Source of the DNA: Sminthopsis crassicaudata
Lineage: Eukaryota
Assembly: GCF_048593235.1 (NCBI RefSeq)
Contig: NC_133620.1
Location: 28,987,772-29,051,771, forward strand
Length of the DNA: 64,000 nucleotides
Direction: 5' to 3'
Part shown: in pieces, positions 14,132-53,252 of the stretch
How positions within the stretch are numbered: position 1 is the stretch's first letter
Layout: each line of letters begins with the position of its first letter
Position numbers and translations under genes: made by a program
The notes under the pieces: generated by a model
What the model saw: the letters and a program-made list of their open reading frames with translations, nothing else
The model's database searches: none
What the model was told of the DNA's origin: nothing

Positions 14132-15307
14132 TCAGCGGGGCTGGCGGGCCCCCTGCAAGTCGGCCAGGTGCTTCTCCAGGGCCTCCCACAGGGCTCGGAT
14201 GTTGCCTTGGCCAAAGCCCGTGGCCCCCCGCCGCTGGATCAGCTCCAGGAAGAAGGTCTCCTCGGAGAAGAGCGGTTTGGTGAAAACCTGCAGCAGGTAG
14301 CGGGCGCCGTCCCCGCCCGGGCCGCCGTCCCTGTCCAGCAGGATGCCCAGCTCGGCCAGCTTCGCCACCTCTTGGCCGGCCGCCAGGATCTGCTCCACTT
14401 TGCCGGCCTGCCGGTAGTAGGCGTCGGGAGGGGTCACCAGGCTGCCGCCGGCCTCCGCCACCCGACGGGCCGAGTCCAGGACGTCCCCGGTGTAGAGGCC
14501 CACGTGCTGCAGGCCCGGGGCCCCGTGCTGCGCCAGGAAGACCTCGACCTGGTCCCGGGCCCCTGACGGGCCGGGCAGGGACTCGCCCAGCACCAGCAGC
14601 GGGGCCTGGCTGCCCGGGGGCGCCTGCAGGGAAGTCAGCCGCAGGCCCCCGGCCCGGCCGGCCCGGATCTCCAAGCCGCGCTCGGGGTGGTCATCGGCGG
14701 GGTCTAGGCTGAAGCGGCGGAAGCCCAGACACTCCTGGTACCAGCGCCGCCACGAGCTCGAGCTGCCCCGGGGGCAGGCCAGCGCGATGTGGTCCACGTG
14801 ACTGAACCAGTGGCCCGGGCCGGGGTCGGGGCCGTCGGGGCCGCCGCAGCCCTGGAAGCCCGGCAGGAAGGGCCCCCGGTAGGCGCCCCGCTCCAGCAGC
14901 GTGTGACTCAGGTTGCCCACCGGGGAGCGCACCACGGCGTAGGTGACGGCGCCCTGGGCGTCGGCCACGGCCCGCGGCGGCACCGCCACCTGGCAGCCCA
15001 GCTCCCGCAGCGCCCCGACGGCCCCCCGCACGTCCGCCACTTCGAAGCACACGTTGGAGGCGGTGGGCACGGCGTGCGCGGGGTCCACGTCGTAGAGGGG
15101 CCCCTCGCGGCCGGCCCGCGAGCCGGGCGCGCTCTCGTTCACCAGAAACACGGCGTCCCCGCTGCGCAGGGCCAGCTGCCGCCAGCCGCCCGCCTCCCGC
15201 ACGGCCACGGGCCGGAAGCCGAAACAGCGCTGCAGGTCCCGCGCCAGGGGCTGGCCGCGGGGGACGTGCAAGGAGATGTGGCACAGGCGGCCCACGGGGG
15301 CGGCCAT
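14132..15307 (-). CDS. HPDL: 4-hydroxyphenylpyruvate dioxygenase-like protein, single exon, 391 aa
   Basis: gccgccATGG Kozak start. [66 protein letters not shown] and [23 protein letters not shown] match human HPDL as I recall it. Fe-binding His/His/Glu triad present; intronless as in human. Confidence 0.96.
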
Positions 15308-17129
15308 GGCGGCAAAGGCGGGAGTGGGCTGCAAGCTCTCAGCGCGAGAGGCTCCGTCTGCCGGGGGTCCGGCCTCCCGAGTGCCTTTGAAGCATCGGGA
15401 GGGGACTGAGGGCGGCGTGTGGGCGGAGGTGGGGCCCGAGGAGTGGGGAGAGGGCGGGCCGAGGGCTGCCCGGGGAGGGGGGGGTGAGGGCAGTGCAGGT
15501 GGCACGCAAAGGAAGGGGGGAGGAGGTGGCGCGGGGGGGGGGGGGGGGAGGGGGGAGGCACCGGGAGAGGAAGCCCCGCCTGCCCCCCCTGAGCCCGCCC
15601 CGGGTCCGCCCCGCTCTAAGCACCGAAGAGGATGGGGGCCCGGGGAACTGGGGGCCGCCAATCCACGCGGCTGGGGCGGGGGCTCGGGGACGGCCCGCAC
15701 GTGCTCCGCCCGGAGTGTTCCCCGCCCTCCTCTCCTCCGCTGGAAACTTTCCGAGTCGGGGCTGGAAGACCCGAATGCAGGCTCGAGCCCACCTCCTCCC
15801 GCTCCCGCGCTCCCTCCTCCGCGGGCCGAGCACGTGTCCCACGCATTAACTACCTCGTCACGATCCCCGAGGCCTCCGTTTCCCGAGCGCGAGCCCGCGC
15901 TCCCCCCTTTCCACCCTCGCCCCCAGGTCCTCCGTCCCCCCGGTGTGCCTGGCACTGTGCTGAGCTCTGAGGGCGCTCGGACCAGACCCGGAGTTCTCTG
16001 AGCACCCAGCAAGCCCAGCTGTAGGCTGACAGCAGACTCCTCGCTGTGGCCCCCAGAGAGCCGGTGCAGGGCCGGACCCCTGCCCGCGCATCTGAGTGCC
16101 GCTCCCGCCCTCTCGCCTCCCTCGGCGGGCTCCCCACACCGCTGCCTTGTGCAGAAGCCCAGCCCAGAACCCCTGTCCCAGCTCGCCCCCCTCCCGTGCC
16201 GAATGAACTTCTGGGTCCCAGGATTTCCCCTTAACCCCCCCTGCGTTTCCTCCGCCGGGGATTTCTTACTGAGCTGCTAATGTGAGGCCGCCCAGCCCCT
16301 GGAGCCCGGACTGCTGGGAGCTGAGGCCGCCCCAAGGCCGCTTACCCGGAAAAAGCAGCCGTCGGAGCCTAGAGGGAGGCGGGTATCCTGGAAGGGAGAA
16401 GGGGGCTTTCCATCAGGAGGGTCGCTGGGAAGCTCTGAAAGCTGCCCTTCTTGGACCCCAATCACCTGGAGGGGGAGGCAAACTTCAGGCCACAGACCCC
16501 AGTACAGATGGACACTTCCCTGCTGGTTTTAGGGGACTGTAAGGAGTTAATTCTCTCTAAACCGTCCCCGGCATAAGCCACCCTGGCTACTCTCAGCGCT
16601 TCCCCCTCGGGCTCCTTGCCTCAGCTCCCCCCCCCCCCCCCATTCAGCTGCCGAAGTGATTTTTCTTACTCAGGGCTGACGGGATCACTCACTTCTCCAT
16701 GAACCCGTGAGGATCCCTGTTACTTCCAGGATCAAACACGGCATCCTTTGAACGAAAGCATCCTCGGAGCTCTCCCCAGGGTGGTGAACAGAGGAGCTCT
16801 TCCCAGAGCAGCTGGGCCTGGATCCCCGGAGAAAGGAGATGAAAGGTCCAGCTCTGCCGGGCACAGCCCGAGCCCTGGTTGTGTCAGGCGAGTGCTCTCA
16901 GGGTTCCAGATCTTTGCCTTTCCCGGTGGGCGAGAGGGCAGAGAACTAAGGGGAGCCCAAACGGAGCCCGTGTTCATGAACTGCAGACTCCGTGGATCCC
17001 GTATTTTAATATTTTGAGGACTTTGTCTCATCCCTCCTGCAGCATTTGATGGATGAAAAAAATGCCGTGTGGTTTACAACAGCTCCAATCTCCTGCCCAT
17101 CTTTGACAAGACATGTAACCCTAGGCAAG

Positions 17130-17260: not shown

Positions 17261-19582
17261 TCTTTGAGAATCAGTTTCCTCATCTGTAAATTAGGAGGTT
17301 GGTTGGCTGTTAATGTCCCCTCCAGATAGAATTCTTTTCTTACTTTCCTCCCTCCTTTTTTTTCCTCCTTCCCTCCCTCCCTCTCTCTCCTTTTCTTCTT
17401 CTCTCCCTTCCTCCCTCTCTCTGTGTGTCTCTCAATAAAGTTCCTGAAGAGTGACTTTTTTTTTTTCTTTTCTTTGTATTGCCAGTACTTAGCAGAGTGC
17501 CTGGTACATAGTAAGTGCTTAATAAATGCTTGTTGCTTGACTCCCCCCCCCAAAAAAAAAGAAAAAGTGACACCATTCAGTTCTCCCTGCAATAAAGGGA
17601 CCTACCACCTCCTTGAGCAGTCCAGGCTGCTCTGGGACTAACTCATGGCTGGAAAGTTCTTCCTGATAGATAGCCTGAATCTGCTTTTTTTTTCCAACAC
17701 TCCCCATTGATCTTGGTCCTCCCCATAGGACTGCACAGAACCAGGCTGATTGCTCCTTCCCAGGACAACTTGTCCTTTCTGAGGCTTCTTTTCTGTAACC
17801 AAGCTAAGCATGCCCAGTCCTTTCCATATGCACCCAGGCTCTTCCCAGTTCTAATTGCAGCCCCTCAACATCCTGACCACTGCCTCTCGAGGGATTCCAA
17901 TACCTTAGTCTCCTTCGATGACAATGGCAAATGAGCCCAGTATTCCTGGTATGACCTGACCAGGATCCAGGGCTGGAGAACCAGCTTCTCTTGGGGCCTG
18001 GGGGAAGCGGCTCCTGCACGGCCCTCCAACAAGCATGTGGCCAACTTCTTGTTTTTTACAGGCGAGGCACCTGGATGCCAGAGACCAGAAAGCCCAGCTT
18101 GTCCCTTGGCTCCGAGCTGTCTCACGAAGCCAGACTTTGATTTCAATTTCCAGGAACAGTTTTTCTAGGGTTATCACTCATCCCCACAGGTCTTGGCCAG
18201 GTTCTCTATCCAGATGATTCCTCGGGTGTCTCTCTACGTGCTATTCCTCTTTTCCTGCCCAAAGCCTCCGAGTCCTCCAACAGCCTTTGGCCCAGTGCCC
18301 GGAGAAGGAAGGCCTCTGCTCACCTGCGCCTCCTGATCCGGAGCACTTAGCTAACTGGCCACACAGGTCCAGTCTGGGCCAGACAGATAAGCACCACCGG
18401 GTGAACATTAACCAAGATGGGGGAGGAAGAAGGGCAGGCGCTAGTATTTCTTCTCAACCCCACAGAGTATTTCAGACTGTAAGGAAATCCTCATCCAGCC
18501 TGTATTTGAACAGGAATCCCCTCTAGTGACCATCCAGGCCGCCCATGAGGGCGATCTTAGTATGTCAACAGGAAGCCTGTTTAAGGACGGGATAGCGCTC
18601 TTTGCAAGGAAATTTGTCCTGCCCGTGAGTCACAGTCTGCCTCTTTGCAATTGACCCCGTGCTGGAGAGGAGACTTTTCCCATCAACTGGGTACCTGGAA
18701 TTGTCAGCATCCTTCTAAGGGCCAAGTTATCACTGGCTGAGCTTTTCTGCATTCAAATCTGAGCAAGGCTCTCCCTGGGATGGGAGGCAGAAATATTTGC
18801 ATATGTATATACACTTTAAAAAACAAACAAACAAACAAAAAACATTTCCTTCTTTTTTCCCCTTTTTGAAGATTGAATATTTTTATTTTTCCCAATTACA
18901 TGTAAAACAATTTTTTTTACATTCATTTTTAAAACTTTGAGTTCCAGATTCTCTCCCTTCCTCCTCACCCCCACCTTCCTTTAAGAAGGCCCAAGAAATG
19001 CACCCCCTTTTCCTGGCTTTAGAGGTCAATGAATATTGTTAGTTACACCATTGCCACAGCAGAGAGCGCAGTTGCCTTTTAAAAATTCACTTTTATTTTG
19101 AGTTCTGAATTTTCTTGCGACTGTGAAAGCAAGAAAACCAAAACTTGTTACCAAAAATGTATTGCCATTCAAAATAAATTACATTCAAAAAGAAAATTTT
19201 CTCCCATCTGCATGTGGAATCCATCAGCTGTCCATCTGGAAGTGGACAGCACGTTCATCACGAGTCCCCTGCAATTGGGACTGATCGGCACAGCCAGCAG
19301 GGTTCCCAAGTCTTTCAAAGTTGACTATCCATAATTATTGCTGCTGGACAATCAAGGTGAAAGTTCAGAGGTCATTTCACTGAACTCCTCTTGTTATATA
19401 TTATGTTCTTCCTCCTCCTTCTTTTGTAATACATGATGTTCTTTCTGAGCTCTCCAGGCAGCAACAGTTTCTTAGTTTCTTTTAAAGAGGAGTTGACGTT
19501 TGGAAACCCAAAGTATTTTACTTTTGAAATTTAGAATACAGAATGCTCAAAAGAAAGAAGCTCTTTTAAAAATGTTTAATCT

Positions 19583-22243
19583 ACTGATACCTAAACCTGG
19601 TAGATCGAAAACTGAGAAAGAAAATTATAGACCAATCTCCTTAATGAATATTGATGCTAAAATCTTAAATAAGATATTAGCAAAAAGACTTCAGAAAATC
19701 ATCTCCAAGATAATACACTATGATCAAGTAGGATTTATTCCAGGAATGCAGGGCTGGTTTAATATTAGGAAAACTATTAATATAATTGACCATATTAATA
19801 ATCAAATTAATAAGAACCATATGATCATCTCAATAGATGCAGAAAAAGCATTTGACAAAATCCAACATCCATTCCTACTAAAAACTCTTGAGAGTATAGG
19901 AATAAATGGATTATTCCTTAGAATAATCAGGAGTATATATTTAAGACCGTCAGTAAGCATAATATGCAATAGAAATAAACTGCAACCTTTCCCAGTAAGA
20001 TCAGGAGTGAAACAAGGTTGCCCACTATCACCATTACTATTCAATATAGTACTAGAAACGCTAGCCTCGGCAATAAGAGCCGAGAAAGAGATTCAAGGAA
20101 TTAGAGTAGGAAATGAGGAAATTAAACTATCACTTTTTGCAGATGACATGATGGTATACTTAGAGAACCCCAAAGACTCTGCTAAAAAGCTACTAGAAAT
20201 AATTCAAAATTTCAGCAAAGTGGCAGGATACAAAATAAATCCACATAAATCCTCGTCATTTTTATATATCACTAACAAAATGCAACAGCAAGAGATACAA
20301 AGAGAAATTCCATTCCAAACAAATGTTGAGAGTATAAAATATTTGGGAATCCATCTACCAAAGAAAAGTCAGGAATTATATGAGAAAAATTACAAAACAC
20401 TTGCCACAAAAATAAAATCAGATTTAAATAATTGGAAAGACATTCAGTGCTCTTGGATAGGCCGAGCGAATATAATAAAGATGACAATACTCCCCAAACT
20501 AATCTATTTATTTAGTGCTATACCAATCAGACTCCCAAGAAACTATTTTAATGACCTAGAAAAAATAACAACAAAATTCATATGGAAGAATAAAAGGTCA
20601 AGAATTGCAAGGGAACTAATGAAAAAAAACTCAGAGGAAGGTGGTCTAAGTGTACCTGATCTAAAGCTATATTATATAGCAGCAGTCACCAAAACCATTT
20701 GGTATTGGCTACGAAATAGACCGGTAGATCAGTGGAACAGATTAGATACAAAGGACAAAAAAGGGTACATCTATAGCAATCTGATCTTTGACAAACCCAA
20801 AGATTCCAACATTAGGGATAAAAATTCATTATTCGGAAAAAACTGTTGGGAAAACTGGAAATTAGTATGGCAGAAATTAGATATGGATCCACACTTAACA
20901 CCAAATACCAAGATAAAATCAAAATGGGTCCATGATTTAGGCATAAAGAGGGAGATAATAAATAGATTAGAGGAACAGAGGATAATCTACCTCTCAGACT
21001 TGTGGAGGAGGAAGGAATTTATGACCAGAGGAGAACTAGAGATCATTATTGATCACAAAATAGAAGATTTTGATTACATCAAACTAAAAAGTTTCTGTAC
21101 AAATAATACTAATGCAAACAAGATTAGAAGGGAAGTAACAAATTGGGAAAATATTTTTAAAAACAAAGGTTCTGACAAAGGTCTCATTTCCAAAATATAT
21201 AGAGAACTGACCCTAATTTATAAGAAACCGAACCATTCTCCAATTGATAAATGGTCAAAGGATATGAACAGACAATTCTCAGAGGAAGAAATTGAAACTA
21301 TATCCACTCACATGAAAGTGTGTTCCAAATCACTACTGATCAGAGAAATGCAAATTAAGACCACTCTGAGATACCACTACACACCTGTCAGATTGGCTAA
21401 GATGACAGGAACAAATAATGACAAATGTTGGAGGGGATGTGGGGAAACTGGGACACTAATACATTGTTGGTGGAGCTGTGAAAGAATCTGGCCATTCTGG
21501 AGAGCAATCTGGAATTATGCCCAAAAAGTTATCAAACTGTGCATACCCTTTGACCCAGCAGTGCTACTACTGGGATTATATCCCAAAGAAATACTAAAGA
21601 GCGGAGAGAGACATATATGTGCCAAAATGTTTGTGGCAGCTCTTTTTGTTGTAGCTAGAAACTGGAAGATGAATGGATGTCCATCAGTTGGAGAATGGTT
21701 GGGTAAATTGTGGTATATGAAGATTATGGAATATTATTGTTCTGTAAGAAATGACCAGCAGGAGGAATACAGAGAGGCCTGGAGAGACTTAAATCAACTG
21801 ATGCTGAGTGAAATGAGCAGAACCAGAAGATCACTGTACACTTCAACAACAATACTGTATGAGGATGTATTCTGATGGAAGTGGAAATCTTCAACATAAA
21901 GAAGATCCAACTCACTTCCAGTTGATCAATGATGGACAGGGGTAGCTGCACCCAGAGAAGAAACACTGGGAGGGGAATGAAAATTGTTAGCACTAATATC
22001 TGTCTGCCCAGGTTGCATGTACCTTCGGATTCTAATGTTTATTGTGCAACAAGAAAATGATATTCGCACACATGTTTTGTACCTAGACTATATTGTAACA
22101 CATGTAAAATGTATGGTATTGCCTGTCGTCGGGGGGAGGGAATAGAGGGAGGGGGGGTAATTTGGAAAAATGAATACAAGGGATAATATTATAAAATATA
22201 TATATATATATAATAAAAAAAATTAAAAAATAAAATAAAAAAT
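19583..22243 (+). mobile_element. Young 5'-truncated LINE-1 (RT + C-terminal ORF2, 3'UTR, A-rich tail) with perfect TSD
   Basis: Uninterrupted ORF2 from [16 protein letters not shown] to the stop at 21875, with SLFADDM RT motif and [18 protein letters not shown] knuckle. TSD AAAAATGTTTAATCT at 19568-19582 and 22244-22258. The 5' flank TTTT/AAAAA is the canonical L1 endonuclease site. Confidence 0.97.
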
Positions 22244-26790: not shown

Positions 26791-27379
26791 TTCAACTCAA
26801 ACGCAGGCTTCTCTCCCCTTCCTCATCCCCTTCTCTTTCCTCATCCCCCTCCCCTTTCTCATCCCCCTGCCTTCCTCCTCCCCCCTTCTCCTTCTCTCCC
26901 AGCCTCCAAACTCCCCCCCTTTTTCCTGCCCCCCCTCTTCCCCTTCACCGAGTTCAGAGGCAGTTGGGATTTTCCTCTTCAGGGCTAGAAAGGACAAAGT
27001 CACTCGGGAAGGCCTGAGAAGCTGACCTGGCCTAGGGACAGAGAGACCTTTGGGCTCCTCCCCCAGCCTCACATTGTGAGTCCCGGGAGCCTGCCCTGGT
27101 GCCAGGGAAGGGGATCAGAAGCCAATTCTTCTCGGAGCTTGGCGGGCATCTGTGCCAGGCTTCCAGGGATTCCTCCTCTCTCCCCACTGCTCCCCATGAC
27201 CCACAGACGGAGGGGCTGAGAGCTCCCCGGACTGAGGCAGAGCCAGCGGGGGAGGCAGCCCCAGAGCCGGCTCGGGTCAGCCCTGTTGTCCAAGGCCGCC
27301 ATTGCAGAGATGAGTCAGTGCTGTCCAGGGGGCAAAGGGCCTGGTTTTATGACATTTATCTCTTATACAATCTTAGGTC

Positions 27380-27610
27380 CCTTTTTTTTTGTTCTTATTC
27401 AGTCATGTTGGACTCTTTGGGACCCCATTTGGGGTTTTGTGGGCGGAAATCCTGGCATGGTTGGCGTTTCCTTCTCTAGCCCATTTTACAGATGAGGAAA
27501 CTGAGGCACACAGGGTGCCGTGACTTGCTCTGGGTCACACAGCTAGGAAGAGTCTGAGGATGCAGCAAGCTCCCCTGACTCCAGCTCTGGCGCTGCAGCC
27601 TGCACCACCC
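27380..27610 (-). mobile_element. MAR1/MIR-type SINE
   Basis: TCAGTCATGTTGGACTCTTTGGGACCCCATTTGGGGTTTT..CCATTTTACAGATGAGGAAACTGAGGCA..GTGACTTGC..GGGTCACACAGCTAG. Confidence 0.75.
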
Positions 27611-28531
27611 AGCCTCCTTGGCCTCACTTTCCGCTTCACTCCAGCACCTCTGAGCAGGTGTGTTTGGAACCAAAGCCAGCGCCCTCATTTTACAGATGAG
27701 AACACTGAGGCTCAGAACAGGAGGGCCTCTCTGGGCTCCCGGGGGAAGGCCTAGGGCCTGTGGCTCTGCAGTCTCACCAGGCGGCCCTCCCAGAGCCGGG
27801 CTCAGAAGCTGGGGCCGGAATGGAAGCTTCTCAAGGGCAAGCCCGAGTTCCTTTTCTTTGTTTTATTTTCCCTGGTGACATGGGAAAACATCTCTCTTTT
27901 GTTATAATGTACATTTATCTTTTAAAAAATTGTATTTTCCTATGATTCACGTTGGGAGAAAAAAATCAGCACAAAAGGAAAAACCCAGAAGAAAACGGCG
28001 AATATCGCGTGTGTGATTCACGGTCAGTCTCTGTAGTTCTCCCTCTGGATGCAGACGGCCCTTCCCTCCAAAAGGCAGGGGGATGGCCTGGCTCACTCAC
28101 CCGCCGGGGAGAAGCAAGTCTGTCTTAGCTGGCTATCCCACAGGCCGGCTGCGGCGGACCATGAGATGCTTTCCTGCCGGTTTTGTTCAGCATTTCAGCA
28201 TTAGTTCATGTAAATCTTTTTTTCCCTGAGGCAATTGGGGTTAAGTGACTTGCCCAGGGTCACACAGCCAGGAGTCTGGCTTTTCTAAAATCAGCCCACC
28301 CATAATTTTTTATAGAAGAATGAGATTCCATCACTTTCATATTCAGCCATTCCCCAATTGATGGGCGTCTGTGAGCCATTTCTTAGTGTTTACCTCTTTA
28401 AGGTCTTAACACGGGTAGTGCCTTGTACCCAGTAAGTGTCTAATTAGTGCTTATTGAATGAATGGGAGTAGAGGGGGGCTCTCTCTCTCCCAGCCCCCCT
28501 AAGACCTGTCACCTCTGTTCTCCAGGCAGGG

Positions 28532-31500
28532 ATGGGGGCCCGAGGCCTTGCCGTGGCCATCCTGCTGGGGCTGGCGGGGGCCACCCTGGCCTCCAAGAAT
28601 GGCTCGTGGATCTGCCAGCCGGCCCCAAAGTGGCAAGTGGACGGGGGCGTCTCCCCCATGGAGGAAGCCCTGGGCAATGTGACGGTGGTGGCCCTTCTGA
28701 AGGCCAGCTGACACTTCTGCCTCCTGCAGGCTGCCAGGTGACAGGCCTCAGAGGGAGGGTCTCGAGGAGGAGGGGCGAGGGTGTGCGAGGGCACAGCGCC
28801 AGTCCTGGACTGGGGGGGGGGGGGGGAGACAGAGGTCCCGGCTGGCTGACTCCGGGCAAGTCATTTTGCCCTATTTGCCTTGGTTTCCTTCTCTGTAAAA
28901 TGGGCCAGAGGAGGAAATGGCCAGGGATCTGCTGGCAGAAACAAGGGGTCCGGGAGGAAGAGGCGAAGGAGCCAAACTTCAGGCCCAACCGGGACTTCTC
29001 GCCGCGGGGTTACGTCCGGGCATTCTCAATTCTGAGACTCAGTTTCCCCGTGTCACAAAATCTCATCATCGGAAGGGAGCTCGGTGGGAGTAAGAGCAGC
29101 CTTCTCCATCCCAGAAACAGGTGGCTCTACTTGCATCCTCTGAGGACGGGGAGATCACCACCCCGGGGGCGGCCTGGTGGGAAACTTCCAGGCCTCCAGG
29201 CTCAGTCAGGCCGTAGCGGCCCCTCCATGACAGCCTCTCCAGCTCTTGGAGCGGGCAGCCCCTGCCTCCCCGTCCTAAATTGGTACTTGATGCCCGCAGG
29301 AGGCCCCTGGCAGCCACTGGGCACGGCGGGAATGGCGGACACGGGGTCTCCTGGCCCTTCCGAGCTGAGCTGCCCCCAGCACCCCCTTCCTAGGCCAGCC
29401 CCATGAATGCCCCTTTCTGCATGTGTCCCTTGCCTGTTCCCAGGCCCAAGCAACAGAGGCTTTATTCATTGAGGAAAGGGGGAGGGACAAGAAGGGGCAG
29501 AGACAACTGACCCAGAAATGGGATCTCACTGGAAAGTGAGTCCTCCCCTGACTGGGGGCCAGACTGACCTGGGGAGGTTCCACCCAGGGGCTCCTCTGCC
29601 TCCCTCCTCCTCAGCAGCCCCAAAGCCCCCAGGGGTTTATCTGCCCTGACACATCCGTGGGAGCAAGGTGCTGGTCCACTAGGACCACCAGAAATTCCTG
29701 TGGCACTCCTACTATTCAAGACCATTTTACAGAGGAGGAAACTGAGGCTGAAGGGAGGTGGCTTTTAGCTCAAGGTCTCAAAGTTAAAGGCAGGGCTGGG
29801 AACAGCCCCCTCTGACTGCCCTGCTCCATTATCTCAAGGTCAAGGCCCCTGGCAGCAGAGGCTCCGAGGGCCCGAGGGATGGAGGAAGAGCCACCAAGGC
29901 CCCACTAACGGTGCCCTTTCTCGTCCTCAGGATAGGCAACCTGCAGGGGCGCCTGGCGCGCGCGGGCGCTGCTGGGGTCCGCTTCATCATAGTCAATCAC
30001 AAGTCGGCCGCATCCCAGGTCCTGCACGGGGAGCTGGAGCTCCAGGCCCCCCGCGGTGTCCCCGTCTACAACCAGCGCGGGCCTGGCCCCGACATCTGGG
30101 GCCTCCTTGGAGGGGCCAAGGACGACTTTCTGGTTTATGACAGGTGGGCCCCGGGCCGGGCGTGCTGGGGAAGGGGGGTGGGCAGCACTGCTGACTGTTC
30201 TGGGCCACAGGCCGGGACCTTCCCAAACCTAGGGTAGCTGGGGATGCCCTTTGCCCCCAGGGCCGACTGCCACGCCAGCCCTCCCCCGCTTTTCTTGACT
30301 TGGTGGAGCAGCCCTGAACCCCTAGATACCTCATGAGTGTGAGTGGGCGGTGGGCACAGCCTCCTGACCTGCTGGGCGGGTGCCCTGCCCCCTCGACCCA
30401 ATTCCTGCATTCGTGGCCGGGGAAACTGAGGCCCGGAGAAGGCCGGGGACAGGCAGCAGACCTGGGGCCGCAAGCAGAATCTGCACCCAAGCCCCGAGAG
30501 TCGGGCCCCCTTCCCCCAACTGTCTGGCCCTGTCCCCCCAGGTGCGGCCGTCTGACCTTCCACATCCAGCTGCCCTTTAGCTCCCTGAGCTTCCCTTTTG
30601 TGGAGGCGGCCATTCGTTTCAGTCACCACAAGGATCACTGCGGGAACTGCTCTTTCTACCCCGCCCAGGTGAGATGAGGGCAGCCCGAGCTCAGGAGAGA
30701 GTTCAGAGCCCGTCCACGCGGCTTCCAGAGACATCAGGTCTCGCTCCAGTGGGACAGACTCGGGGGCCCCCCGCCCCTCGCCACCTCCCTCCGGGAGACC
30801 CCATGCAAGGCCAGGACTCCCACTGCGCCTCGGGGGGCTGTGAAGGGAGGTACATATTTACATACACGCTCAGTCTGGGGCAGGAAAAGGTGCCCAGTGC
30901 CAGTAACAAAGCCTCCGTGCCCGGGGCTGCTCAGAGCTGGTTTGGTCACTTTGCCCCGGTCCAAACTATCTACGCCAGCTGGAGCGTTCATTCCCAGGGC
31001 CGGGCCTGGTGCAGGGGAAGGGCTGAGTGGGTGACCCCCGATGGGGATCCCAGGCAGGACCGGGTGGGCCAAGGAGGCTCGTTCCTTGTCCTGGCAGAGG
31101 GGCAGAGGCCCCCGGCTCACCTAGGCCAGCCTCGCCTCAGACGCTGAGCAGCTTGCCTGAAAATTCTCTCTACAAAAAGCTGAATGGGGGTGAGTCTCCC
31201 CCCCCCAGCTGGACTGAAGCTTCTCCAGATGGGAGCTCTAGAGTGGCCCGGGAGGCTCACTCCCCCAGTTCTGGGGCTGCCTTTCTGGCCCCTCGGCCCA
31301 GCCCCACAGACCCCCCCAAGCTGGCGAGCGTGTGCCCAGTGGTCATGAGGGTGACGTGGCTCTCATTTCCTCTCCAGGTGAACGGCACGGACCAGGCTGA
31401 GTCAGCAGTCCCATCCCCTACCCCAGAAGGAGGGCAGAGGCCCCCACATGCAGGGCCCAGCACCCACTGGCCAACTCTGCCGTCTGGCTCCCCTCCCCCA

Positions 31501-31602
31501 GCTCAGGCCCCTGGGCCTGACCACAGCCCCAGCAAGCTGCCACCTCCCAGCCAACCTCCCTACAACCTGGAGCAGCTTCCCCATGAGCCAGCCATTCCTT
31601 AA
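28532..31602 (+). CDS. SELENOP2: Selenoprotein P paralog (SelPb), 256 aa, one selenocysteine encoded by in-frame TGA at 28709-28711
   Basis: Exons 28532-28737, 29931-30143, 30542-30668, 31378-31602 (771 nt, phases 2,2,0, all GT-AG; CACTAAC branch point at 29903). Protein: signal peptide MGARGLAVAILLGLAGATLA, CQPAPKWQV, VTVVALLKAS-U-HFCLLQAAR, FIIVNHK, VPVYNQ, DIWGLLGGAKDDFLVYDRCGRLTFHIQLPFSSLSFPFVEAAI, CGNCS. This matches the SELENOP N-terminal thioredoxin-like domain (human VTVVALLQASUYLC..KDDFLIYDRCGRL as I recall it). SECIS and polyA signal lie downstream. Confidence 0.93.
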
Positions 31603-31740
31603 CCTCACAGGGGGCACGGCCAGGCCCCCCGGCCCATTCCAGAGAGACAGACAAGTGAGGTGTCCCTGGTGTCGCGGTCACCACGGAGGTCTGCGTCCAT
31701 CAAGGCCGGGCCTTGCCTAGCCCCGGACCTCATCCAACCC

Positions 31741-31820
31741 CCTCCTTCCCTCAATTAATGATGCCCATGGTGCAACCCCGAGCAGCGGCCACAGTGGGCT
31801 GACTCCACGTAGGGAGGAGG
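31741..31820 (+). promoter_or_regulatory. SECIS element (selenocysteine insertion sequence) in the SELENOP2 3'UTR
   Basis: ATGA at 31758-31761, 12 nt, AA at 31774-31775, 25 nt, then GA of TGAC at 31800-31803. Helix II: GCCCA/TGGGC + TGGT/GCCA + GC/GC. Helix I: CCTCCTTCCCT/AGGGAGGAGG. Confidence 0.88.
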
Positions 31821-31901
31821 AACGAAGAAGAGTCCATCGTCCCCCCGGGGTGACCACAAGCCAGTGGGGCCCAACCAGTGCCAGGGGCTGGGGAAATGGC
31901 C

Positions 31902-31907
31902 AATAAA
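31902..31907 (+). terminator. SELENOP2 polyadenylation signal
   Basis: AATAAA about 80 nt 3' of the SECIS. Confidence 0.75.
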
Positions 31908-33452
31908 CTCGGCTGCCTACAGCTGCCTCACGGTCCGCTTGGGGGCTTTCAGGGGGCTGAGGGGGACCCCCACTGCAAGTGGGGCTGGGAGGGAGGCAGG
32001 TGTCCTGGGACGTGTGGGGGGGAATGTATGTGGGGCAGTGCGAGTGGGAGAACGGGAGGGGCCATACCCATAGGGGATCAGAGGGAGGCTGGGGGGGGGG
32101 CTTCCTGGAGGAGGCAGCCTGAGGGCCCCTGAGAGGGTTGGGAGGAGCCCAAGGTCATGGGTGACTGAGGACCCAGCCCTCTCCTCCCCCGACTTGCAGC
32201 AGTGGGGCTGTCCCCTAACCAGGGGCCCCTTTGGTGACTTTCTGGGGAGAAATAGGTCCTGCCCCTTAGGGAACCCCCCGCAGCCCCAGCCTGGCTCCCC
32301 CGCCCCAAGCCCTCCCGGGGTGGTCCCTCTGGGACAGAAGACTGGCCTAGAGCTCCGAGGGCCACGCTCGGGTCTCACCATGGGGCTCAGGCTCTCAGCC
32401 CTGATGTTTTAAGGCTTGCTCTGCCCTCAGCCACAGGTGGGAGATGGGGAGGACCAGTATGCCATGAGAAGACTGTGGGGGCTCTCGGCGGGAGCAGGAA
32501 TGCCACAGCAACATCCCTGACAAGCCTCCCCTTGAATACCTCTAGGGACAGGGAGCTCACTACCTCACCTCAAGGTAGCCCAATAGCTGGGGGTCAGCTC
32601 TCATTGCCAGGAAGCTGCCTGTGTACTCTTCCCCCCCCCCCCGGGGGGTTCCCTGGGGCCAAGTAGACGGGGCTAGACCGCCTCCTGGCGAGGACCCTTT
32701 GTGACCCTTGAAGGCGGATCTCAGGGTGTGAAAGAGACTGGTTTTGCACAGATGGCCAGGGTTCGAATCCTGCCTGACTCCTGGGTGCTCCTTCCCGGCC
32801 CAATTTCCTCTGCAGAATGAGCCGGGTTGGGTTCAGCGGGCTCCCGAGCTCTGAACCTCTCCAGGGGCAGCCCCTGCCCTTGAGCCCAGGCTTGGTCCCA
32901 GGCCCTAAAAACCCTCCATTCACTTCAACAAGCTTGTGCTCGCCGGCACCACCTTGTGGCCAAACATGCATCCTCAACAAAGGCAGGGGAATAGGCATTT
33001 ATTAAGCACCTACTGTGTACCAGACTCTGTCCCGAGCCCTCCTGGCCCAGGAAGCAGGTGCTCTGATTATCCCCATTCTACAGATGAGGAAACTGAGGTA
33101 GCAGAGGTGGAGGAGCTTGCCCAAGCAGGCCTCCCTGACTCCCAGGCCAGCTTAGGGGCTTTGGGGAGGGGCCTTTCCCACAACTTCCCTGAGAGAGACC
33201 TCTCAGACCCAACCTCGAGGCCCCACAAGGGGGCCCTCTCCCAGACATGCTCCCCCTCCCTTCTCTAATCTTCCTCCCCCAGACACCCACCACCCTGCCC
33301 CCACCCAGCCTCCTCCCTCTGTCTGCAGGGGACCCCCAGTGAGTCGGCTCTGGGTGGGGAGCCCCCCTGCTGAGCTCAGGCCTCTGGAGGTGGGGGGGAG
33401 GTGGGGTTGATGGGGCTTCCAAGTGAGGGGGGGCCGGGCCAGGCTTCTAGAC

Positions 33453-33458
33453 TTTATT
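33453..33458 (-). terminator. UROD polyadenylation signal
   Basis: TTTATT on plus, about 95 nt beyond the UROD stop. Confidence 0.75.
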
Positions 33459-33552
33459 CTCTTAAAAACAGATTTTCTCGCAGACATTCTCTGGTCGGGG
33501 GCGGGCGGGGGGGGACACCTGAGACCAGTCCTGGGGGGCGGCAGGGGCAGGG

Positions 33553-36489
33553 TCACTTGCGCCGGAGCTGGCGGGAGTGCCGGTGCACGGCCTCCACGAA
33601 GGCCCCGACATGGGCAGGGTCCATGTCCGGGTAGATCCCGTGGCCGAGGTTGGCGATGTGGGGCTGGGGCCCGAAGGCGTCCAGCATGCGTTCCACCAGC
33701 TGCCCGATCCGGTCCTGGGGGGGGAGTGAGGGAGGTCAGGCGGGCTCGGGGGCCAGGCGGCCCACTGTGGTCAGTCCCCCCCTCCCTTGTTTCTCCTACC
33801 TCGGAGGCGTAGAGGGCGCAGGGGTCCAGGTTGCCCTGCAGGGTCACTGACTTTCCAACACGTTCCCTGAAAGGAGCCCTCAGTCAATAACGTTTACCAC
33901 AAGTCCATTCCCGGGGTCCCCCCCCATCCACCCTGCAGGGGCCTCCCACTCAGGAAGCCTCAGGAAGTCCCTGGAAGATAGCACCCATGTTACCCATGGA
34001 GGGACCTGGTGGGGGTCCCGCTGTCCATCTGGGGCCTTGCACCTGGCCCCGGGCTCCCCACTCACCGGGCCAGTGCAGGGTCCACTTTCCAGTCGATTCC
34101 AACCACTTCATACCCAGACTGGGCCAACTCCTCCAGGGCATAGTGGCCGTCCTTGGCAAAGATGATCTGGGCGGGCGTGGGGGCGGCAGTCAGTCTCTGT
34201 GGTCGGCCCCCACCTTCCCTGCCTACCCCTCCCCCACCTGTCCTCCCCCCCCCCCCCTCAGTGTTTCGTTCACATGGGACCTTACCAAGGGCACTGGCGC
34301 CAAGCCCGCCTCCCGCAGACCAGCCTTGACCCTCTTGGCCACGTCACGGATGTAAGGCAGCGCAAACTCAGAGAAGAGCTCGGGACCCAGGTGGCCGGCA
34401 TGAGACTCAAACACCTGCAGGGCCTGAGGGGGGACAGGAGTCGAAGGTTAGAGGTCAGAAGTTGGGGGGTGCCCAGAGCCACGAGCCTCCTTTCCTGGCC
34501 CTCACCTGTGCCCCTGCGGCCACCTGGCCCACAAGGTAGGGGACGAGGACATCGGTCAGCAGGCCCAGCAGCCGGTGACTGGCCTTGGGCCACTGGTAGA
34601 GCCAGCGCTTGGCCTGGGCCATGGTGGGGGAGCCGCCGCCCTCCACCATGTAGGACATCAGCGTCCAGGGGGCTCCTGAGAAGCCGATGAGGGGCACGCG
34701 CCCCTCCAGCCGCTGGCGCGTCAGCGTGATGGCCTGGAACACGTAGCCCAACTCTTGGTCCACGTCCACGGGGGTCTGGAGGCGGTCCAGGTCCTGCTCC
34801 TCCCGCAGGGGTGCCGAGAAGGTGGGCCCCTTGCCAGGGACCATGGTCACCTGCAGGCCCAGAGCCTGGGGGACGGGGGGGCCTGAGTCTGAGGCCAGGG
34901 GCCCTTCCTCCGGTGTCCCCCCAGGACCCAGTAGCCAAGGACCCTCCCCCTCCCCCCCAGCAGACCCTGCAGCCAGGGGACCCTCCCTCCTGTCCCCTCC
35001 TCCCCCCGGCTCCTCCATACCTGAGGCACCACCAGAATGTCAGAGAAGATGATAGCAGCATCGAGGGGGAAGCGCCGGAGTGGCTGTGGGAGGACACGGG
35101 GCGTGAGCGTCTCCAGGCCTGGGCAAGGGGTCCAGGCCACCCCTGCTGAGCCCGGCTCCTGGTCCTGCCTCCTCCCCCGGCCCCCACAGGCCCAGGTTAA
35201 ACGCAGCAACGGGGAGCCCCTGGGCTCTAGGGCTCGGCCAGGCCTCCTTTATAGGAGGGGCTTTGGGGCCAGGCCTGGAGCCCTGAGCCGGCTCCTCCCG
35301 AAGCCCCCCCAGACTCCCCGGAATTCCGCCTCTGAGCCCCGCAGCCCGGGGCCTCCTCGCACTCAGAAGCTGCTTCCTCCAGGTGAGGCCCCAAGTCCTG
35401 CCACGACTCTCCCCTTTTAGAGACATAGAAACTGAGGCTGGAGGAAGAAGAGCAGGCTCTAGGGGCCTGACTCGGGTCTGAGTTCGAGTCACTCTGGGCA
35501 GGCTGGCGGACCGCAGGGCCTCAGCACGGAAGGTTGGGCCTGCGGAGCGGGGGCCGGATCCGGGAGGAGTCGGGGACTTCTGCGGGTCTGGCCTCTGTGG
35601 GCCCCTCACCTGCAGGGTCAGCTCGCAGCAGGCCTCGGGGGAGCGGCAGGTGCTGAAGAAGTCCTGGCCGGCCCTGGTATCCAAGAACTCTGGGGAGGGG
35701 AGGGCGTTAGGGGGGCTCCTGCCCCCCCCCTCCCCCACTCTCCCCCCCCCCACTCGGCCCCCCCTTGCCCGGGCCCCTTACCCTTCAGGTAGCGGCCGGC
35801 CTGGCGCATGCACCACACGGGCGTGTAGTCGGTGGCCTCCCCCCAGGCCGCCCGCAGGAAGGTGTCGTTCTGCAGCTTGGGGAAGGCCTGGCCTCGGTCC
35901 CCGCCTGGGCCGCCATCAGGGCTCCTGGGGCTGCTGCTGCTGCTGGGGGCGGGGGGGAAGCGGGAGGGCCTCAGGCGGGGCGCCCCACCCCCCTTATCAG
36001 CCCTGGCCAGGCCCTGTCTCAGCCTCCCCCCCCCAGCCAGGAGGCCCGGCCCTGACCCCCCACCCCATCCAACCCCTGCTTGGACGGGCCCTGGGGGCCA
36101 GGATAGAAGAGGCTTGGGGGGGAGGGCAGGGGCCCTGAGTACTGAGCCCAAAGGGGGGCTATCCTGGGGGAGGGGAACAGGGCCAAGTGCCAAGGCCAGG
36201 ACCAAGGTGGGGGGGCTCTCCTGGGGAAAGGGGAGGGGGGCCCTGAGTGCCACAGCCGGCGCCATGGGGGTGTCCTGGGGGTGGGATGAGTGCCAAGACC
36301 AGGACCAAGTGAGGGAGCTATCCTGGGGGAGGGGGCCCCGAGTGCCGAGCCAAAGTTTGAGGGGTTCCGGGGAGGACAGGGGGAAGCCAGGGCCAAGGGG
36401 GGTGTCCTGGGGGGAGCCCAAGGGGCTCTGAGTGCCGGAGCCGGGACGAGGGGCAGCGACTGGACTCACCTCAGGCTGGCCTCCTCCAT
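33553..36489 (-). CDS. UROD: Uroporphyrinogen decarboxylase, 9 coding exons (about 383 aa)
   Basis: Exons (minus): 36489-36470, 35942-35782 (acceptor ambiguous among tandem CAGs), 35689-35610, 35083-35021, 34865-34506, 34423-34286, 34166-34066, 33866-33800, 33714-33553. Motifs: [87 protein letters not shown]. Confidence 0.97.
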
Positions 36490-36640
36490 CGCGTGGACCC
36501 CACTTACTTCTGAGGAGTCTAGAGCAGCCCCGGCCTCCTCCGGAAGCCCTGCCTCCGGCTTTGTCCCCGCCCCGGTCCCGCCCCCGCACCGCCCCGGTCC
36601 CGCCCCACGCCGCTGCTGGGCGTCGCCATGTTGATATCAC
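36490..36640 (-). promoter_or_regulatory. UROD proximal promoter (GC boxes, YY1-like motif)
   Basis: Duplicated GGGGCGGGACCGGGGCGG GC-box array at about 36560-36606, and CAACATGGCG (YY1-like) around 36629 on the minus strand. Confidence 0.55.

Positions 36641-42079: not shown

Positions 42080-53252
<11,173 letters not shown>

Follow-up and report, generated by a model that had tools for sequence, protein, structure and literature searches.

An apparently intact SELENOP2 gene with a most likely recoded UGA codon in the marsupial Sminthopsis crassicaudata

The locus examined here lies within 64,000 nucleotides of contig NC_133620.1 of Sminthopsis crassicaudata (assembly GCF_048593235.1), a stretch referred to below as the window. 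It holds four exons whose joined reading frame is interrupted by a TGA. Two questions follow: is this codon read as selenocysteine (Sec), and to which member of the selenoprotein P family would the product belong? Taken together, the evidence makes it very probable that the locus is an intact marsupial SELENOP2 gene. Its UGA is most likely recoded, and the product would be a secreted single-Sec protein of thioredoxin fold, with redox catalysis as its likeliest role.

Gene structure and reading frame

A four-exon frame of 256 codons, with a TGA in the motif KAS-U-HFC as its only internal stop, had been proposed at this locus in the original prediction. Joining the coding exons (Table 1) bore this out. 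On the plus strand of the window they amount to 771 nt, that is, 256 codons and a TAA; the sole internal stop is the TGA at codon 60, and all introns follow the GT...AG rule. The motif places Sec at residue 60 (U60) and a cysteine at residue 63 (C63). The exons were searched one by one, and they were joined in scripts only, with X at the Sec position.

The predicted SELENOP-type domain is present in exons 1, 2 and 3, which match the Pfam profile SelP_N (PF04592) in order, with E-values of 1e-8, 4e-16 and 1e-14, respectively. Exon 1 covers profile positions 2-36, and the two following exons continue the profile as listed in Table 1. Exon 4 gave no match in a Pfam search, and the tail that it encodes contains neither Sec nor Cys. 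On reading of the sequence, the N-terminus (MGARGLAVAILLGLAGATLA/SK) resembles a signal peptide, in which a charged start is followed by a 15-residue hydrophobic core and a T-L-A/S site.

The true 5' end of exon 1 can be placed only by candidate acceptor-like AGs, found at 28524-25 and 28528-29. The upstream edge first set at 28526 corresponds to nothing more than an acceptor-like AG, and the AG common to four marsupials (gcag/gg) lies 3-4 nt downstream of it.

Table 1. Positions of the SELENOP2 features in the window
Feature	Position	Strand	Description
Coding exon 1	28532..28737	+	Start codon, signal-peptide-like N-terminus, start of SelP_N, Sec codon
In-frame TGA, codon 60	28709..28711	+	Most likely read as selenocysteine in U-H-F-C
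Coding exon 2	29931..30143	+	SelP_N profile positions 48-116
Coding exon 3	30542..30668	+	SelP_N profile positions 118-155; contains conserved C-G-N-C
Coding exon 4	31378..31602	+	74-residue Pro/Ser-rich tail; TAA at 31600-31602
SECIS (candidate)	31734..31822	+	Helix I, AUGA 31758-31761, helix II, AA 31774-31775, GA 31801-31802
AATAAA polyadenylation signal	31902..31907	+	Common to all four marsupial loci

SECIS element and selective constraint

Both 3' elements of the original prediction, a SECIS and an AATAAA, were recovered. The SECIS hairpin is located 155 nt 3' of the TAA stop and has a small stem within its apical loop. A pattern scan, whose thresholds were fixed after the candidate had been seen, returned a single site across 128 kb, where shuffled sequence would be expected to give 0.03. 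This ratio and the ordered SelP_N matches of three exons place the gene and its SECIS beyond chance. A covariance model trained on bird and fish SELENOP2 SECIS elements only ranked the hairpin as the top match in the window, with 32 bits (E about 1.6e-7) and a runner-up at 17. The same layout was predicted independently by RNAalifold, with nine pairs kept via changes on both sides. In the consensus structure, 82% of cells are paired, compared with 43-61% in slid controls. The element is 87.5% identical to that of Antechinus, and an A-U pair of helix II is changed to G-C. These comparisons argue that the gene carries a eukaryotic SECIS in its 3' UTR.

With the Rfam model SECIS_1 this element went unmatched, although the E-value limit was relaxed to 10, both when positions 27000-33500 were searched and when the search was confined to the 3' UTR. 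Calibration on related loci showed that the model likewise fails on the SELENOP2 elements of the bird and Dromiciops, and that it finds an aligned fish SELENOP2 element at 30.5 bits, below its cut-off. Hence, the negative result at the window says little. The Rfam searches returned only chance matches (mir-25 and HOTTIP_3). In the snakes Ophiophagus and Crotalus, the pattern scan found no SECIS 3' of the gene.

The four exon lengths, the 771-nt frame, the TGA at codon 60 and the GT-AG boundaries of all introns are identical in Antechinus and Sarcophilus, and the SECIS is intact in both. Dromiciops keeps the TGA as well, and the codon aligns with Cys in frog and shark orthologues. In pairwise comparison with Antechinus, exons are 80-94% identical (exon 1, 93% without gaps) and introns 56-72%. 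The dN/dS ratio is 0.19 across exons 1-3, which encode the domain, a pairwise value that is also compatible with very recent inactivation in the window lineage. Such comparisons between sequences indicate that the gene is under purifying selection. Exon 4 encodes a weakly constrained tail whose sequence changes more quickly than that of the domain (dN/dS 0.50, with 68% of amino acids shared with Antechinus). The window protein and its Antechinus counterpart agree at 82% of 190 residues; against the proteins of koala, wombat and possum, identity is 66-69%. Overall, the gene is nearer to Antechinus and Sarcophilus than to koala, wombat, possum, opossum or Dromiciops.

Frameshifts in orthologues of close relatives, which had been named beforehand as a sign against the gene, are absent from Antechinus and Sarcophilus. 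The Dromiciops assembly contains one extra base in exon 2, which may mean that some marsupials can do without the gene, or may reflect an error of assembly. The extra base would suit a decaying or silent relic in which the TGA is a plain stop and the product a 59-residue peptide or nothing, as would the automatic gene models of relatives, all of which avoid the TGA. Such a relic is distinctly improbable, and a pseudogene was judged unlikely, given that the frame after the TGA is intact in three species with no change in length. The dN/dS ratio above was obtained jointly over three exons and includes the stretch after the TGA, and both the SECIS and the AATAAA exceed the flanking 3' UTR in conservation relative to Antechinus. 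Moreover, the extra base of Dromiciops belongs to a stretch of seven consecutive G, and conservation of the frames continues beyond it.

Predicted product and role

As an intact SELENOP2, the gene would give rise to an mRNA with four coding exons, in which codon 60, a UGA, is most likely translated as Sec by means of the single 3' UTR SECIS. The encoded protein would be secreted, probably N-glycosylated and about 236 residues long after removal of the signal peptide. Its U-x-x-C motif would occupy the place of C-x-x-C in thiol-disulfide oxidoreductases, ahead of the short, fast-evolving Pro/Ser-rich tail. The likeliest role is extracellular redox catalysis, by thiol-disulfide exchange or peroxide reduction, as for the N-terminal domain of SELENOP. 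That the gene is transcribed, and that its product receives Sec, is secreted and acts as an enzyme, is inferred from features of the sequence.

The fold was assessed by proxy, using the AlphaFold model of P0008, a frog orthologue with Cys that is 43% identical to the window protein. In this model, pLDDT exceeds 90 across the domain, and the motif C59-G-F-C62 lies at a strand-to-helix junction, between strand 49-55 and helix 60-78. The best Foldseek matches are DsbE/ResA/thioredoxin-like proteins, with TM scores of 0.65-0.74. By this proxy, the window protein is predicted to adopt a thioredoxin-like fold with its motif at the same junction. The likeness to bacterial TlpA/DsbE/ResA-type thiol-disulfide oxidoreductases, which covers the predicted fold and the position of C/U-x-x-C, is a resemblance of fold and not membership. 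Sequence identity is 11-19%, and the bacterial enzymes use Cys and are not secreted animal proteins.

Membership of the SELENOP family and apparent secretion could also fit a protein that is expressed with Sec but serves mainly in selenium delivery or storage, as SELENOP does. We consider this highly improbable. With one Sec per molecule and no Sec- or Cys-rich tail, the protein cannot carry much selenium, and the TAA that ends it is conserved in four marsupials. The Sec is predicted to sit at the catalytic position of the thioredoxin fold. In addition, a selenium carrier would have no reason to be retained with Cys at the Sec position, as this gene is in frogs and sharks; Cys in frog copies has been reported (bioRxiv 10.1101/2025.05.29.656587), and the frog sequences examined here agree. 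A redox enzyme rather than a selenium carrier, as originally proposed, is thus a reasonable reading of a protein with one Sec and a predicted thioredoxin fold.

Orthology and annotation

The closest proteins, from Antechinus, Sarcophilus, Trichosurus, Dromiciops and koala, are named "selenoprotein Pb-like". A phylogeny of the protein with SELENOP and SELENOP2 sequences, suggested in the original prediction, paired the window gene with Antechinus (100/98) within a marsupial clade (100/98). This clade is nested in a SELENOP2 clade (95/88) that includes shark, frog and caecilian Pb-like proteins, and the gene falls outside SELENOP1, among marsupial, bird, frog and shark "selenoprotein Pb" sequences. 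In the window, an ORF with an HPDL-like glyoxalase domain lies upstream of SELENOP2 and UROD lies downstream. UROD also follows the gene in Antechinus, Trichosurus and Dromiciops, and an HPDL-like gene is upstream of it in the bird Chionis. Domain matches, named relatives, tree topology, the conserved TGA and SECIS, and these neighbours support orthology of the window gene with vertebrate single-Sec SELENOP2 (SelPb), the identity first proposed. The SelP_N domain and the position of U-x-x-C would also be found in a copy of canonical SELENOP (SELENOP1) that had arisen by recent duplication and been truncated, with loss of the Sec-rich tail, but the chance of this is negligible. The AU test rejected a grouping of the gene with tetrapod SELENOP1 (lnL difference 68.9, p 0.0002), and with it such a copy. 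In the tree the gene sits with shark, frog and bird proteins, the bird has the same HPDL neighbour, and homology links the SECIS to the SELENOP2 elements of birds and fish.

From SELENOP2/SelPb as known in zebrafish (sepp1b), birds (SELPB) and marsupials, the window gene shows no difference of kind. Common to both are SelP_N, four coding exons, one SECIS, the HPDL neighbour, a single Sec in U-x-x-C roughly 60 residues into the protein and a short Sec-free tail, whose sequence is lineage-specific. SELENOP1, the plasma selenium carrier, has a second SECIS and His-rich stretches. The window gene resembles it in the N-terminal thioredoxin-like domain with U-x-x-C and in the signal-peptide-like start. 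The exon boundary after the motif is apparently the same, since the first residue of truncated SELENOP1 models aligns with exon 2. Unlike SELENOP1, it belongs to a separate clade and has no Sec-rich C-terminal domain with two SECIS elements; one TGA in the frame and one SECIS-like site were found in the whole window.

Although the gene had been described as hidden, Mariotti et al. 2012 (PMC3316567, Table 1) already recorded SelPb in marsupials and platypus and its loss in placentals. A 2026 preprint again reports SelPb in marsupials and its placental loss, and a paper of 2026 describes the flaw in annotation as a general one. Marsupial presence and habitual mis-annotation are already published, novelty is low, and the picture of selenoprotein evolution, known in these respects since 2012, is unchanged. 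The initial account of a single-Sec paralogue in fish, amphibians and birds that was lost in placentals holds for the loss and fails for the frog copies examined, which carry Cys. It is conceivable, though doubtful, that purifying selection maintains SELENOP2 in marsupials for a job that placentals lost or passed to another protein, and that the placental loss accompanied a rearrangement of the older HPDL-SELENOP2-UROD arrangement. In that case, only marsupials among mammals would allow the enzymatic role of a SELENOP-type thioredoxin domain to be studied apart from selenium transport.

A literature search found no tested SELENOP2 function in any mammal, which makes a clean gene model a starting point for studies of expression and activity. 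The main import of the locus lies in annotation. Mis-annotation by standard pipelines had been anticipated, and among relatives, to which this result applies, every public marsupial SELENOP2 model recovered avoids the UGA. These models are wrong, and the correct one has 256 codons with Sec, most likely, at codon 60.

Gene structure and family assignment

The candidate SELENOP2 (SelPb) gene comprises four coding exons on the forward strand. Joined from a reading of 28000-33000, these yield a spliced frame of 771 nt (256 codons plus a TAA stop), whose sole internal stop is a TGA at codon 60, within the peptide K-A-S-U-H-F-C. All introns are GT...AG, each AG is preceded by a pyrimidine tract, and the window sequence contains no N. 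The original prediction had described the same four-exon frame with its single TGA, SECIS and AATAAA, and both coordinates and description are correct apart from the 5' edge. It placed that edge at 28526, where there is just an acceptor-like AG; the one that all four marsupials share is in gcag/gg, immediately before the ATG. An upstream non-coding first exon is probably present. As far as sequence can indicate, residues 1-20 of the spliced protein, MGARGLAVAILLGLAGATLA, resemble a signal peptide, and N-x-S/T sites occur at residues 23, 49, 175, and 184.

Features of the SELENOP2 locus and its neighbourhood (window positions)
Feature	Position	Strand	Remark
Glyoxalase-domain ORF	14132-16009	-	fits HPDL; upstream of SELENOP2
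LINE reverse transcriptase ORF	19500-21872	+	791 codons; RVT_1 E 7.5e-50
Coding exon 1	28532-28737	+	206 nt
In-frame TGA	28709-28711	+	codon 60
Coding exon 2	29931-30143	+	213 nt
Coding exon 3	30542-30668	+	127 nt
Coding exon 4	31378-31602	+	225 nt
Candidate SECIS	31734-31822	+	top covariance-model match
SECIS helix II	31764-31797	+	
AATAAA	31902-31907	+	sequence reading
UROD start	within 35618-36637	-	downstream of SELENOP2
Long GC-rich open frame	43777-45393	-	weak, sub-cut-off match to EBNA2_Core

When the exons were searched against Pfam one by one, exons 1, 2 and 3 matched SelP_N at profile positions 2-36, 48-116 and 118-155, with E-values from 1e-8 to 4e-16, all surpassing the curated cut-off. 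The matches run in profile order, and the TGA sits in the gap past position 36. Exon 4, which encodes a Pro/Ser-rich tail without Cys or Sec, had no family match in this search.

Searching exon 2 against 1.8 billion representative proteins returned 114 matches. The best-matching relatives are marsupial proteins named selenoprotein Pb-like from Antechinus flavipes (XP_051852828.1), koala (XP_020843605.1), and, in RefSeq, Sarcophilus harrisii, Trichosurus vulpecula and Dromiciops gliroides, together with unnamed SelP_N proteins of wombat and opossum in UniProt. With X at the Sec position, the spliced protein is 82% identical to the Antechinus protein over 190 residues; identity is 66-69% with the koala, wombat and possum proteins and, over the full length, 43% with the frog orthologue. 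These values place the window in a marsupial nearer to dasyurids than to diprotodonts, and distinct from both Antechinus and Sarcophilus. Three public records of the SELENOP2 clade, P0021 (Geotrypetes seraphini), P0113 and P0027, carry R or W rather than U or C at the Sec-aligned position (KAS-R-HFC, AS-W-HFC, KAS-W-QFC); this looks like differing handling of UGA by the sources rather than true substitution.

In a maximum-likelihood tree of 60 domain sequences, the window gene pairs with Antechinus (support 100/98) inside a marsupial clade (100/98). The latter is nested in a 30-member clade (95/88) that takes in birds, teleosts, and proteins of shark, frog and caecilian carrying the name "selenoprotein Pb-like". 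A separate tetrapod clade holds Arctic fox selenoprotein P with a whale and a lizard protein. The alternative raised with the original prediction, a recent truncated copy that groups with canonical SELENOP, fails: placing the marsupial genes in a single clade with the Arctic fox group lowers the log-likelihood by 68.9 units (AU p 0.0002).

The fold was modelled on the frog orthologue, which carries Cys at the Sec position, from an alignment of 43 sequences. The model reaches pLDDT >90 over approximately residues 30-150 and places C59-G-F-C62 between a strand (49-55) and a helix (60-78). Among solved structures, Foldseek ranked DsbE, ResA, CcmG and thioredoxin-like proteins highest, at a TM by target of 0.65-0.74, with glutathione peroxidases and peroxiredoxins next. 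Given this motif location and these matches, the Sec of the window protein would occupy the position of the attacking cysteine of thiol-disulfide oxidoreductases.

Candidate SECIS element

Rfam returned no SECIS match in the window, nor in a search confined to 328 nt with E allowed to reach 10. In calibration, SECIS_1 matched the fish SELENOP2 element aligned with the window site at 30.5 bits, short of the 35 bits set as its cut-off, and missed the bird and Dromiciops elements. The model is weak on SELENOP2 SECIS sequences. A covariance model trained on two bird and two fish SELENOP2 elements, with marsupial sequences excluded, gave its top window match at the candidate site (32 bits, E ~1.6e-7), with the runner-up at 17 bits. 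A pattern scan based on the general SECIS consensus, with thresholds fixed after the site was known, found this single site in 128 kb (both strands) versus 0.03 per shuffled window.

The single-sequence fold contains helix I, an internal loop carrying 5' AUGA and 3' UGA, a helix II of 10 pairs with one purine-purine mismatch, and an apical loop opening with C-A-A and holding a small additional stem. RNAalifold independently recovered this layout from a six-species alignment (A1: four marsupials, a bird and a fish), in which 9 pairs survive two-sided changes; 82% of cells are paired, compared with 43-61% in controls whose partners were shifted by one to three columns, these counts being only indicative at n=6. 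The helix II mismatch recurs at the same position (A1 columns 36/64) in all four marsupials, as G.A, A.G, G.G and A.G, and neighbouring pairs show compensating changes. On homology and structure, the candidate SECIS is taken as established.

Selection, annotation and proposed function

Loci of Antechinus, Sarcophilus and Dromiciops were compared with the window. The first two retain all four exon lengths, the 771-nt frame, the TGA at codon 60 and GT-AG at every intron. Relative to Antechinus, exons are 80-94% identical without gaps and introns 56-72% identical with numerous gaps; the 80-nt SECIS stretch reaches 87.5%, and the 3' UTR ahead of it 66%. Judged by dN/dS against Antechinus, 0.19 across exons 1-3 and 0.50 in the tail, the gene is under purifying selection, the part after the TGA included. 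In Dromiciops, a run of seven G in exon 2 (L003:7906-8119) has one additional base that shifts the frame, representing either an assembly error or very recent inactivation. The remainder of exon 2, like exons 3 and 4, keeps a conserved frame; the public model has been cut short to 157 residues.

None of the recovered public marsupial gene models includes the UGA, which fits the mis-annotation by standard pipelines that had been guessed. The Sarcophilus model splices out approximately 15 codons around it; those of Antechinus, koala and possum swap exon 1 for a start within intron 1; the wombat model starts directly after the Sec; the opossum model, and an older one most similar to Sarcophilus, run through other sequence; and the Dromiciops model avoids the UGA by truncation. 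Such models fit the "skipped" and "downstream" classes of PMC12822975. The protein collection searched contains no U residue, so correctly curated entries may be missing from it.

The original observation is confirmed, and its SELENOP2 interpretation draws support from the SelP_N order, the tree with its AU test, and the conserved TGA and SECIS. The best reading is an intact SELENOP2 under selection, in which UGA codon 60 would be recoded through a single SECIS. Its product may be a secreted selenoenzyme that combines a thioredoxin fold with a disordered tail. A role as selenium carrier is argued against by the presence of just one Sec, the conserved TAA stop, and the fact that frogs and sharks have kept the gene in a Cys form. 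SELENOP2 has been reported as turned into a Cys form in Anura and sharks (10.1101/2025.05.29.656587), and the recovered frog and shark sequences agree.

SelPb is known from fish, birds, platypus and marsupials and is absent from placentals, its loss being dated before the placental split (Mariotti et al. 2012, PMC3316567); loss of the single-Sec SELENOP2 in Eutheria is also reported elsewhere (preprint 10.1101/2025.05.29.656587; BMC Genomics 2026). The window gene is an ordinary member of this published family, in a lineage already reported to have it, and the practical value of the finding is a corrected gene model. Our literature search turned up no paper dealing with what marsupial SELENOP2 does or where it is expressed.

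Genomic neighbourhood

The gene order is HPDL-like (-), SELENOP2 (+) and UROD (-). UROD also lies downstream of SELENOP2 in Antechinus, Trichosurus and Dromiciops, and in the bird Chionis minor SELENOP2 is immediately preceded by an HPDL-like gene on the other strand (L004:1-946, -), the two forming a head-to-head pair. Since the bird shares HPDL-SELENOP2 and three other marsupials share SELENOP2-UROD, the interval is ancestral and no marsupial novelty. The AT-rich stretch separating HPDL from SELENOP2 holds the LINE ORF, probably a young copy. The match of the long GC-rich frame to EBNA2_Core, a Pro-rich viral domain, probably reflects composition in the CpG-rich region on the HECTD3 side.
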